DNA of 64,000 nucleotides from Oikopleura dioica (taxonomy: Eukaryota > Animalia > Chordata): contig OU015567.1 in NCBI GenBank assembly GCA_907165135.1, positions 13,082,001 through 13,146,000 on the forward strand, given 5' to 3'. This document shows, piece by piece, positions 60,514-64,000 of the stretch; the first letter of the stretch is position 1, and every line of letters starts with the position of its first letter. Below the pieces are notes generated by a model. The model saw only the letters and a list, made by a program, of their open reading frames with translations. It was not told the DNA's origin and made no database searches. Both the position numbers and the translations under genes were made by a program.

Positions 60514-61645
60514 ATGAAAAGGTCCGGGAGTTTTGAAGAATCCATCGGCATTCCCGAATCTTCATCAACACCAAAAAAGCTAAGAATTAAGAAACCAGAC
60601 GACTTCGAACTTGTTCACCCCGATTCCGTCACATCCTACGGACAGTTTGGAAAATGCGTTGGACCTGAATGCGACGGGTAAGAATTAAAGGATAATATTT
60701 AATTTAAATGAAGAACTTAAAATCATGACTTATGCTACTGGCTTTTTAGAGTACCCGCAAAGACAGTCGAAATCAACGACGAGAGACTATGCGTAGAGTG
60801 CGTGAAAAAGAAGCATGGCCACAGATTTCTTGACAGAACATTCGACAAGACCGACGCGGAATTCAAATGCCCAGCTTTCAATACCGACGGAAGCTGTAAG
60901 TCGGAGAGAATCTCTTTCCGCGAATTCTACCTCGGATCTTGCTGTGAGCAAGCTTCTAAATGGTTGACAGAGAATGAAAAAGGTAATAAAAATCAGAAGT
61001 AAAATTCTTAATATAATTTAAGCGAAGAGAAAGAAGCTCGAGGTAGTCAAAACTCTCCATGCAGAAATCAAGCAAGAGAAAATCGAGGCAAAGATCAAAT
61101 TTGACGAAAAGGCGAAAATCATCAAGCGTAAGGAGCAAAATCGAGAAGTACTCAAGAGAGAAGTAGAGGCGGCTATGAAAAAGCTAGAGGAAGCAGAAAA
61201 AGAACTTGCGGACGAAAAGAAAGCTCAAGAACCGATGGAGAGAACGCTGGAAGACAAAGTTCGAGAGGTGAACATGGTTGTGAAGCGCTACAAGCAGCTT
61301 TCTTACGAGTACCATGAGGTCACAGGCGAAGAGGACATCAAAGAAGAAAAAAAGAAAACAGGTAGCTTAACTCTTTCTAAAAATATCTATTCCAATATTT
61401 TTTTAGGTTTTTTCGACTTCTGTCGTGTTTGTAAGGAAGAGTTCACTGAAGAATCCCACGGTTGGTTTAGCGTCCATCGAGTGGTGCTTCGACGATGCGG
61501 TCATGTTGCCTGCCACAGATGCCTCGTAAATATCCTCGATCCCACGGATGACGACTTCCCATACGAAGACAGGGGACGGTGTCCTACCTGCAAACAATCT
61601 TTCGGAGAGGAATGTTTGGTCGACATATACTCGTTCGACCAGTGA
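60514..61645 (+). CDS. C-terminal RING (C3HC4) protein with coiled coil and N-terminal Cys cluster
   Basis: CRVC...CGHVACHRC...CPTC; Glu/Lys-rich coiled coil. Confidence 0.85.
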
Positions 61646-61901
61646 ATGACTTTCGAAAATACTGCAACTGATACACTAACACTGTCAAAGACCATTTGCC
61701 CTCTATGCTGCATAAATTATGCATCAACCATTGATTTCGGACTCAAATTTACTAACATCTCGTATTTTGAATAAATTTGATTAGCCAAAACTCGGCAAGT
61801 ACCGGATTATGATTGTGATTACGCTTCGTTGAAAAGGAAGGAGTTTCTTCCGATTAAATTTCCATCTAATAAATGGTCGGAAATGGACTTGAATTAGAAC
61901 A

Positions 61902-62117
61902 ATGACCACTGTAGAGAAGATGGGTGGATCTACTTCTTTAAAAATTAAAAATCAACAAATGGGTAAATCTTATGAAGCAACTTTCCTGTTCTTTCCGATT
62001 ATATTTATCGTCGCTGTGCTGGTCATCATATTTTACCTACTTTGCTGTTGCTACAAGAAAATCACGAACCATAGAAGGGAAAGATACTCAAGAGGAAATG
62101 CCAGTGAAAATGTTTAG
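61902..62117 (+). CDS. Small single-pass membrane protein (tentative)
   Basis: 71-aa ORF with FLFFPIIFIVAVLVIIFYLLCCCYKK. Confidence 0.45.
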   Translation: MTTVEKMGGSTSLKIKNQQMGKSYEATFLFFPIIFIVAVLVIIFYLLCCCYKKITNHRRERYSRGNASENV

Positions 62118-62798
62118 ATAGAGCTCTTTTGCATCAATCATTAATTTCGGACCCAAATTTTCTGACAAATAAATTAAAATTTTTTCCGAGTTATTTTATT
62201 CGAAATTATCTGAGACAAGAGTAGCTATCAGATGAACGCCGCTAATACAGTAGATGACTGTATGATAATGGTTGCCTGACCTTGAGACAGAGTGAGAGGG
62301 TGCTCGGGCCAATAAGCGAGGGGCGAGGGTGGCTTTCCAATTCAGCGCTCTCCCGAGTCCGCCTCTTGTTTTCAACTCGAACTGCGCTGCTTTTCAGATT
62401 CCGAGAACTGTTTCGCTACTGAAGCAAATTTGGCCGCAGAGATTTTTCTTCCGGAAGAATTTCCTTGCTCTACAAACTTGTGAAAAAACAGATGATTCTT
62501 CGAACTTTTTATTCTTTATTTTTAATTAATTTCTGATTTTTTTACTAAAATATTTTAGAATTAAAATTGTCGTCTATAGCATATCAATTAATCCATGTAT
62601 AAATAGAAAATTGATAAAATCTCAAAAATAGCAAGTTCAAGAGCCACTTCCGTCTCAAAACTGGGGCTAATCCCTGTATTTTTCAATTATCGAGATTTCT
62701 CCAGTACGATCAAAGTCAATTTCAGACTGTGTGTATTGTTGCTGCGCAAGAAGCACTTACGAAAGAGGGTTGAGTTTTTTCCTGCACCGAGTAATTGT

Positions 62799-63541
62799 AT
62801 GAACAAAAGCCAGTGCTGCGCCGCTGCTAATGAGTGCCAAGAAGAAACGTCGCAAAATAGCCGTCAATCCGGCCCTGGCCAAGGTCGGAGAGTGCGGCCC
62901 GCAGTGTAAGAAAAGACAAATGGCCAACAAAATGATTATGGACAATGACAAACGACAAGTAAGTTCACCTCCTTTTTTCTAATGAAAACTTCAATCCCCA
63001 TTTCAGAGCTTCTCGAATCGGCTCCAAGCTCCAACCCTGGTCACTTTGGACGAACCAGGAGCACTTCTGCCCGAGCTAGGCGAGGAAACTGCGATCGATG
63101 TCAATGTCCATGGAGTTTGCCACGCACTACAATTTGGTATGACAAGTTCAACGAGCGAACCGATTTCTGACTGTCTTTTTTAGAATGCCTGCTTTTTGAA
63201 AAAGCAAAGGTGATCGTCGTGGAGGGCAATTCCGAGGCTACAGCTTCAAAACAGGCTTTCGTCGAACTTCTGAGGTAAGAAGAGGAATTCTATTATTGAT
63301 GGAAGTTGACCATACATATGTATAGTTTTTGCGAAGACGAGTTACAGTATCAAAGCTGCATGATGGCGATCCCCAAGAATCGATCGGACCTTCGAACGAC
63401 AGGTACACCTACTAGCATCATTAAAACAAAATTCTTATGGCCTATTTAGTTCGAAATTTGTGTCAATTTCTTGACTTCGAGCTCATCCCTCCCGCCGCCG
63501 GTTGGAGCGAGGATCACATCTATCTCGCCTTGGACTTCTGA
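62799..63541 (+). CDS. OAZ: Ornithine decarboxylase antizyme
   Basis: Exons 63007-63136, 63184-63274, 63326-63402 and 63450-63541 splice to ...ASKQAFVELLSFCEDEL...IPKNRSDL...LCQFLDFELIPP...YLALDF*, matching the antizyme C-terminal domain (SKxxF..LLEFAEE; KNR; FLGFE). Confidence 0.88.
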
Positions 63542-64000
63542 GCTTCTTGTTCAAATCTCCGAATCTTCTGCTCCTCAATGTTCATCTCTAAATGTTCAAA
63601 ATTAAACTTTAACAACACGAATAATGAAGATTACCATCATCTCATTACAAAATAGCCTCGTTTTCTCGTCGTTCCAATTCTCAATTTTTTTAATCCAGAT
63701 TCATAAATCAGCGTTTTCACGGCGATAAATTCAAGTTTTATTTAATAAGATAGGCATCAAGAAAACGAACCATCAAATGTCGCCTCAAGATCAAAGTTAA
63801 TTTTTCATTTTTCTTCAAATTTAATTTAAATTTCTAAAAGATTTTTAGAAATTCGACTATTCATTTTTACTAATAATAACTGATGTTTTATGGCTCATTT
63901 CAAGCGCGCTTATGTCTTTTACTCGGTTTTCAAATTTCAAATTGTTCATTTTTGTCAAGTTTATTCTCCAGTTTCTCAAGTTCTTAAGTTTTCTCATCTC

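Follow-up and report, generated by a model that had tools for sequence, protein, structure and literature searches.

The stretch of DNA analysed here (the window) comprises 64,000 nucleotides (nt) of Oikopleura dioica (GenBank assembly GCA_907165135.1, contig OU015567.1, positions 13,082,001 to 13,146,000, forward strand). Towards its 3' end lies a gene that we assign, by profile and predicted fold, to ornithine decarboxylase (ODC) antizyme. Antizyme frameshifting is a standard example of regulatory recoding: in a survey of ∼300 genes, all the animal and fungal antizyme genes known in 2007 required a +1 shift (PMC1874602). The exceptions are Tetrahymena and possibly Capsaspora (PMC1874602), and a 2016 review lists Tetrahymena only (PMC5009743). 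A literature search combining antizyme with Oikopleura, larvacean, appendicularian or tunicate returned nothing on a larvacean antizyme gene. The gene described here has an antizyme frame that is open from its own AUG, and this start is overlapped by a conserved, out-of-frame upstream open reading frame (ORF), hereafter ORF1.

In the window, ATG 62799 is the start of a 36-codon ORF that closes with GTG TAA at 62904-62909, and relative to this ORF the frame of ATG 62830 is +1. The upstream AUG is 31 nt upstream of the main AUG, and ORF1 stops 77 nt into the coding sequence (CDS). Five exons starting from ATG 62830, separated by four GT-AG introns of 48, 47, 51 and 47 nt, yield an uninterrupted 172-codon ORF, and hence a protein of 172 amino acids (aa) without any shift. 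The features of the locus are as follows (SL, spliced leader):

62724-62725, + strand: SL trans-splicing acceptor AG, placed by the 5' letters of the metatranscriptome contig X1; L001, L004 and L018 mRNAs show the SL joined to ACTG... at the homologous place
62726-62798, + strand: 5' leader of 73 nt with no AUG; ATG 62799 is the sole ATG from the SL junction to the main ATG
62799-62909, + strand: ORF1, the overlapping upstream ORF; 36 codons, first AUG, U at -3 (weak context), ends GUG-UAA, antizyme frame at +1
62830-62909, + strand: dual-frame overlap of ORF1 and the antizyme frame, 80 nt
62830-62958, + strand: antizyme CDS exon 1; main AUG, MSAKKKRRK..., a basic N-terminus resembling a nuclear localisation signal, then the CGPxC motif; identical to the NCBI protein P0006
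62906-62910, + strand: GTAAG motif, once proposed as an alternative donor; not used, no joint reads
62959-63006, + strand: intron 1, 48 nt, GTAAGT...CAG; junction position backed by orthologues
63007-63136, + strand: CDS exon 2; its 43-aa translation matched the orthologue P0002 at 62% identity
63036-63059, + strand: CCUGGU/ACCAGG inverted repeat, arms 63036-63041 and 63054-63059; not conserved
63184-63274, + strand: CDS exon 3, in which the ODC_AZ domain begins
63326-63402, + strand: CDS exon 4, ODC_AZ domain core, ...AIPKNRSD...
63450-63541, + strand: CDS exon 5, closing with the stop TGA at 63539-63541

An antizyme gene had been proposed at this place by a reading of the DNA letters (the original prediction). 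Its coordinates and frames, the 172-aa model, the 36-aa ORF and the lack of TCCTGA were all reproduced mechanically. To establish the identity of the product, the 43-aa exon-2 piece was searched against 1.8 billion representatives; it led to P0002 (170 aa, 62% identity) and from there to P0006, an unnamed NCBI protein (O. dioica OKI2018_I69 chr2 g7696.t1) that matches the spliced model letter for letter. P0006 stood in as the reference for the 172-aa spliced product in the protein analyses. The gene is already in the NCBI annotation, unnamed and without any remark on recoding; that it would be invisible in the ORF track is therefore right for mechanical ORFs only. P0006 scored 26.1 bits against the Pfam family ODC_AZ (PF02100; cut-off 24.2), and five orthologues including P0006 scored 24.7-26.7 bits, a small and consistent margin. 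Single-exon translations gave no Pfam match, the pieces being too short. A profile of the larvacean family matched the PDB antizymes 1zo0, 4zgy, 4zgz and 5bwa (rat and human antizyme 1), with an E-value of 3.7e-4 for 1zo0. The AlphaFold2 (AF2) model of the protein (predicted local distance difference test (pLDDT) 77; predicted template-modelling score (pTM) 0.73) retrieved with Foldseek, as best matches, the human antizyme 1 chains 4zgy_B (E-value 1.1e-5), 5bwa_B and 4zgz_D (template-modelling score 0.69 by target), followed by GNAT acetyltransferases. Antizymes first and GNAT acetyltransferases next is the order expected of an antizyme fold. By profile and modelled fold, the locus is the O. 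dioica orthologue of ODC antizyme; binding and degradation of ODC are predicted activities. The invariant MSAKKKRRK N-terminus (62830-62856) looks like a classical basic nuclear localisation signal.

The locus is transcribed, as shown by X1 and by orthologous SL-bearing mRNAs. X1 is near-identical to the window (1 mismatch in 214 nt) and spans 62730-62943 gap-free. Ahead of 62730 it has the loose letters TAACAGAC (...TAACAG), and the spliced leader of O. dioica has TCTAACAG at its 3' end (PMC6883708). The SL-type letters ahead of X1 therefore indicate that the mRNA is trans-spliced at the AG 62724-62725, and the mature mRNA starts with the SL joined to 62726. As this acceptor is used and X1 is gap-free, there is no hidden upstream exon and no base error in the critical region, and ATG 62799 is the first AUG. 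Two ways in which the original prediction might have failed are thereby removed: an unseen exon supplying UCC-UGA is excluded by SL-bearing transcripts that are collinear with the genome, and an assembly base error by X1, an independent contig. Spliced contigs of relatives (L001-L018) include as much as 24 nt of this spliced leader and agree in their exon junctions, and the genomic contigs L019-L021 confirm both the acceptor and the position of the intron-1 donor (mRNA L001/L018 compared with genomic L020/L021). Splicing of intron 1 was also seen in the spliced continuation of reads from X9-X11, three runs of raw RNA reads whose source is a sister lineage with <90% identity; they mapped to 62796-62931 only.

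Two sister-lineage genomic contigs (L019:892-1022, L021:1371-1501) have an extra ORF1-frame ATG 130 nt upstream of the main ATG. This ATG sits 5' of the trans-splice acceptor and is removed by SL addition; trans-splicing therefore decides which AUG comes first.

Protein and locus searches yielded 12 distinct larvacean-type lineages, with 38-73% identity to the window and falling into three deep clades; they come mostly from marine metatranscriptomes, and many bear the Oikopleura spliced leader. Profile searches from the larvacean family returned larvacean-type proteins only and no canonical antizymes. In all 12 lineages the spliced transcript contigs encode an uninterrupted protein of 168-175 aa with the MSAKKKRRK start. 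Across the first 27 nt of the main ORF, the numbers of variable columns at codon positions 1, 2 and 3 are 0, 0 and 6; this third-position-only variation therefore argues that the main frame is translated from the 62830-type AUG. Six fixed differences at 62848-62901 separate the window from a sister lineage, and five of them are synonymous in the main frame. With an in-frame AUG of the 62830 type, and an invariant MSAKKKRRK under purifying selection at the codon level, in the 12 lineages, it does not hold that there would be no translation without a +1 shift. Judged from these sequences, the antizyme is encoded in one frame, and +1 frameshifting is not needed, in at least 12 larvacean lineages. 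The shift-free antizyme from AUG 62830 that had been predicted from the window is thus borne out by the identity with P0006 and by the 12 lineages.

The upstream AUG proved to be as regular a feature as the main frame. Leaders of 75-190 nt hold exactly one ATG in 11 of the 11 lineages with enough 5' sequence; its distance to the main ATG is 28, 31, 34 or 40 nt, the antizyme frame is +1 to it in every case (11/11), and its -3 position is invariably a pyrimidine (11/11; joint chance 0.005 over seven representatives). Such a leader ATG occurs in 3-5% of shuffled leaders per lineage (chance 0.03-0.05), giving a joint chance of 3e-10 over the seven clade representatives, an optimistic figure as the lineages are related. 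ORF1 measures 34-45 codons across lineages and ends 71-101 nt into the CDS. Identity between the window and the sister lineage, by segment, was as follows:

Leader ahead of the upstream AUG: 66%
From the upstream to the main AUG: 94%
CDS nt 1-102: 91%
Rest of the CDS: 75%

The conservation boundary (66% to 94%) falls exactly at the upstream AUG. Downstream of the main AUG, the ORF1 frame stays open for 71-101 nt into the CDS, compared with a median of 23-50 nt to the first stop in synonymous shuffles (Fisher combined p 0.006, seven representatives), and synonymous differences are rarer in the overlap (0.36-0.44, the value of 0.36 being that of the first 15 alignment columns) than in the rest of the CDS (0.59). 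The ORF1 peptide begins with MVK in five lineages and with MNK or MGK in others, and the fourth codon shows a synonymous UUG/CUG change within one clade. Beyond its first 3-5 residues the peptide is poorly conserved and changes wherever the main frame changes synonymously. On this comparative evidence ORF1 is conserved as a layout, whereas the peptide past the first residues and the site of the stop are not conserved.

A peptide so poorly conserved past its first 3-5 residues, together with a drifting stop, would also suit an ORF1 that has no regulatory role: antizyme would then be made constitutively from AUG 62830, the upstream AUG would be a relic or a simple damper, and polyamine control would lie elsewhere, in transcription or in protein stability. 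The frameshift-free antizyme of Tetrahymena shows that an antizyme without recoding exists (PMC1874602). However, a role-less ORF1 accords poorly with a single upstream AUG that keeps one frame, a narrow position and a pyrimidine at -3 in otherwise unalignable leaders (the 3e-10 above), with the sharp boundary at that AUG, and with a codon choice that holds the ORF1 frame open while synonymous variation is lowered. We regard this explanation as unlikely.

Within the overlap, some codons of the main frame are fixed: Lys6 and Lys9 are AAA in 12/12 lineages and Ile10 is AUA wherever Ile occurs (window 62845-62860), Ser2 is encoded by AGY throughout, and the two Arg residues by CGN. The AAA-AUA-G invariance, which makes a UAG in the third frame, is not accounted for by a need to avoid ORF1-frame stops.

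The place where ORF1 ends bears directly on whether frameshifting has been retained. In 8/12 lineages the UGU of the second Cys in CGPxC, together with the next codon, makes up the stop, giving GUG-UAA, CUG-UAA, CUG/UUG-UGA or GUG-UAG. In L004, in L018-L020 and in the lineage of runs X9-X11 ORF1 closes two codons sooner, with CCC-UAA or UCC-UAA, and in four lineages it closes six codons later (AAG-UAG, AUU-UAA, GUG-UAG or AUG-UAG). The last sense codon of ORF1 is thus GUG, CUG, UUG, CCC, UCC, AAG, AUU or AUG, each of the three stop codons is used, and relative to the second Cys the site is at -2, 0 or +6 codons. L001 and L018, closely related sequences of the O. dioica complex, encode nearly the same protein, and one synonymous Pro change (CCG/CCU) relocates the stop. 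No TCCTGA is present within 61000-64000, and the 5' module A (UGG-UGC-UCC-UGA) is absent. In none of the 12 lineages is the predicted folding of the 120 nt past the ORF1 stop better than that of shuffled sequences (z -1.8 to +2.1; window z = +0.86). According to the antizyme frameshift literature, sea squirts also lack a pseudoknot; the lack of a 3' structure is therefore, by itself, a weak criterion.

These data were weighed against a retained or alternative polyamine-stimulated +1 shift at the ORF1 stop (GUG-UAA in the window), by which an isoform with the ORF1 N-terminus would be made beside the AUG 62830 product and ORF1 would be the sensor. The layout is the classical antizyme one, a short ORF1 and a stop with the functional frame at +1; the stop at the second Cys of CGPxC in 8/12 lineages is near the expected ancestral site; one sister lineage has UCC-UAA and another CCC-UAA, UCC and CCC being known P-site codons (Table 1, PMC1874602); UAA and UAG are nearly as effective as UGA in mammalian cassettes; and such a shift would have the right sign for homeostasis. 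However, (i) the last codon, the stop codon and the position (-2, 0, +6) all vary, (ii) the stop has been moved by a single synonymous Pro change between L001 and L018, (iii) no 3' structure is conserved (z -1.8 to +2.1) and the UGG-UGC-UCC-UGA module A is missing, and (iv) upstream of the stop, selection at the amino-acid level acts on the +1 frame, which is unexpected if this region is untranslated. Of the hallmarks of a frameshift-dependent gene, the short ORF1 and the antizyme frame at +1 are thus present, whereas a conserved shift site and the module A or 3' stimulator are not. The pattern is rather that of a stop whose exact place appears not to matter than that of a programmed shift site, and we consider a retained shift improbable. 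Of the original prediction on this point, the upstream ORF, to which the antizyme frame is +1, stands as a real, conserved layout, whereas GUG-UAA as a novel shift site does not, given the varying codon, stop and position and the lack of a conserved stimulator.

The CCUGGU/ACCAGG hairpin that had been noted downstream was rejected, as was any 3' stimulator: the hairpin lies outside the predicted minimum free energy (MFE) fold, and its arms are absent in the counterpart region of L001/L004, the closest relatives, so that the repeat is lineage-specific.

It had further been suggested that polyamine sensing may have moved to splice-site choice, donors 62906 and 62959 toggling between a frameshift-dependent and a frameshift-free mRNA. 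GTAAG is indeed found at both 62906 and 62959, and joining 62905 to 63007 would mechanically yield ...CAG U/AG (the slash marks the junction), that is, the proposed CAG-UAG shift site; the motif and this mechanical outcome are all that speaks for such a toggle. The RNA reads through: X1 continues to 62943, and in a sister lineage in which the GTAAG is retained ∼110 reads (three runs) continue to 62931, after which the end of exon 1 is joined to exon 2. No joint reads were seen in this material, L004 and L002 have no GT at the corresponding position, and every orthologous transcript uses the 62959-type donor. With donor 62906 unused, the CAG-UAG site was discarded and sensing by splice-site choice is not supported; alternative splicing at this position is highly improbable.

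The explanation we prefer is that of a frameshift-free antizyme gated by a conserved overlapping upstream ORF through start-site choice, to which we give a probability of roughly 0.6. As architecture, a weak and then a stronger AUG with a conserved out-of-frame upstream ORF overlapping the main start is what was found: besides the pyrimidine at -3 of the upstream AUG, a purine occupies -3 of the main AUG in 9/12 lineages. Scanning ribosomes that start at the weak AUG 62799 would be diverted into ORF1 and lost for antizyme, whereas those leaking past it would start at AUG 62830 and make antizyme. ORF1 would thus act as a translational gate, with the ratio of the two initiations, and not frameshifting, setting the antizyme output. 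In the model proposed for plant AdoMetDC, high polyamines cause the 43S complex to skip a weak first AUG and to use the next (PMC2811004). By analogy, and speculatively, high polyamines may raise leaky scanning past AUG 62799; more leaky scanning would therefore mean more antizyme, which is the right sign for homeostasis. That sensing may have moved to start-site choice, as the original prediction had also offered, fits the conserved weak-then-strong AUG pair and is the model we favour. A more specific proposal is that larvaceans swapped the polyamine-sensing +1 frameshift, which ranks among the most conserved recoding events of eukaryotes, for start selection that responds to polyamines, the two AUGs being out of frame and ∼31 nt apart and the decoy frame being all that is left of the ancestral ORF1; we advance it tentatively, at somewhat less than even odds.

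Several points weigh against start-site gating. The use of either AUG is deduced from conservation only. The gate could be constitutive, the polyamine response being speculation by analogy. The clade representatives are not fully independent, which makes the joint probabilities optimistic. The O. dioica complex has C at -3 of the main AUG, so that the window's own lineage is without the weak-then-strong contrast. Exons 2-5 are backed, in this lineage, by the NCBI model and by orthologous transcripts and not by direct reads. Lastly, a stop at the second Cys of CGPxC in 8/12 lineages is also what would be expected of a retained frameshift cassette.

The larvacean gene can be compared with several known systems. 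With canonical metazoan antizyme of the OAZ1 type it shares the ODC_AZ family and fold and a short first ORF of comparable length (34-45 codons) with antizyme at +1. In contrast to OAZ1, the larvacean frame starts at a conserved AUG of its own and has no interruption, so that a shift is unneeded; UCC-UGA, module A and the 3' stimulator are missing; and upstream of the ORF1 stop it is the +1 frame, not the ORF1 frame, that shows constraint. The antizyme of Tetrahymena thermophila is likewise a single ORF without recoding (PMC1874602, PMC5009743). However, Tetrahymena is a ciliate with a variant genetic code and is reported without an equivalent of the upstream ORF1, whereas larvaceans are animals and keep an ORF1-like overlapping ORF. 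The tiny and small upstream ORF pair of plant AdoMetDC resembles the larvacean arrangement in its two close out-of-frame AUGs, the first being the weaker; there, however, the second AUG opens an inhibitory upstream ORF and not the main ORF, and the overlap is 1 nt compared with 71-101 nt in larvaceans. Conserved overlapping upstream ORFs, whose function is predicted only, are also known in the vertebrate mRNAs of SSAT and spermine synthase (SpmSyn) (PMC2811004). These too are out-of-frame ORFs overlapping the main start in mRNAs of the polyamine pathway, although the genes are different, the upstream ORF starts further upstream (74 nt in SSAT) and the overlap is smaller (16 nt). SSAT is polyamine-induced, like antizyme.

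A whole chordate class with a one-frame antizyme breaks the rule that every animal and fungal antizyme needs the shift, and the larvacean gene provides a testable case of a frameshift-based metabolite sensor that has been lost or rewired. If the choice between AUGs is indeed the sensor, larvaceans would provide the first animal antizyme to dispense with frameshifting and would show, as a natural experiment, how a frameshift sensor can be turned into a start-codon sensor. The cassette of ∼185 nt formed by the leader and the overlap suits tests of polyamine effects on start-codon selection, and public ribosome-profiling data of O. dioica exist (Danks et al. 2019, PMC6883708), which makes the key question directly testable.

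As to its origin, ORF1 may be a relic of the ancestral antizyme ORF1, judging by the same relative frame, the similar length, the MVK/MNK start and a stop at or near the expected old shift site. Vertebrate OAZ1 begins with MVKS. Under retention, the MVK start and the ORF1-frame ...PLW..-stop of several lineages may mark the ancestral ORF1, the novelty being the AUG and the open path in the +1 frame. Under fusion, it may instead be the CGPxC of the main frame that matches ...GPxWCS-stop, with which a canonical ORF1 ends; ORF1 and ORF2 would have been joined by an indel at the shift site, and the upstream ORF would be new. The canonical ORF1 end has GP at codons -6/-5 (Table 2, PMC5009743) and reads UGG-UGC-UCC-UGA (PMC1874602).

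A few minor observations concern the surroundings of the gene and its transcripts. A few reads of run X11 lie at 62500-62545, at the left edge of the mapped stretch. They suggest the transcribed 3' end of a plus-strand upstream gene, less than 250 nt from the trans-splice acceptor, and this upstream gene and antizyme may form an operon. In L010 (L010:1-1028, P0013) the contig reaches ∼1 kb farther 5' than the main ATG, the antizyme frame stays open there, and the protein is called as 220 aa; this contig may be an unprocessed or operon precursor transcript. P0024 is apparently a differently spliced or truncated version of the P0013 gene. Finally, comparison of L024:170-330, on a genomic contig of a relative, with the L011/L013 mRNA revealed an A/T-rich intron of ∼79 nt; it follows codon 11 of the main ORF and sits where ORF1 and the main frame overlap. 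Its donor is non-GT (exon ...TCAATAG / GAATAC...AAAAAAG / TGGTGAAC), and L024 may represent a larvacean lineage with non-canonical introns.

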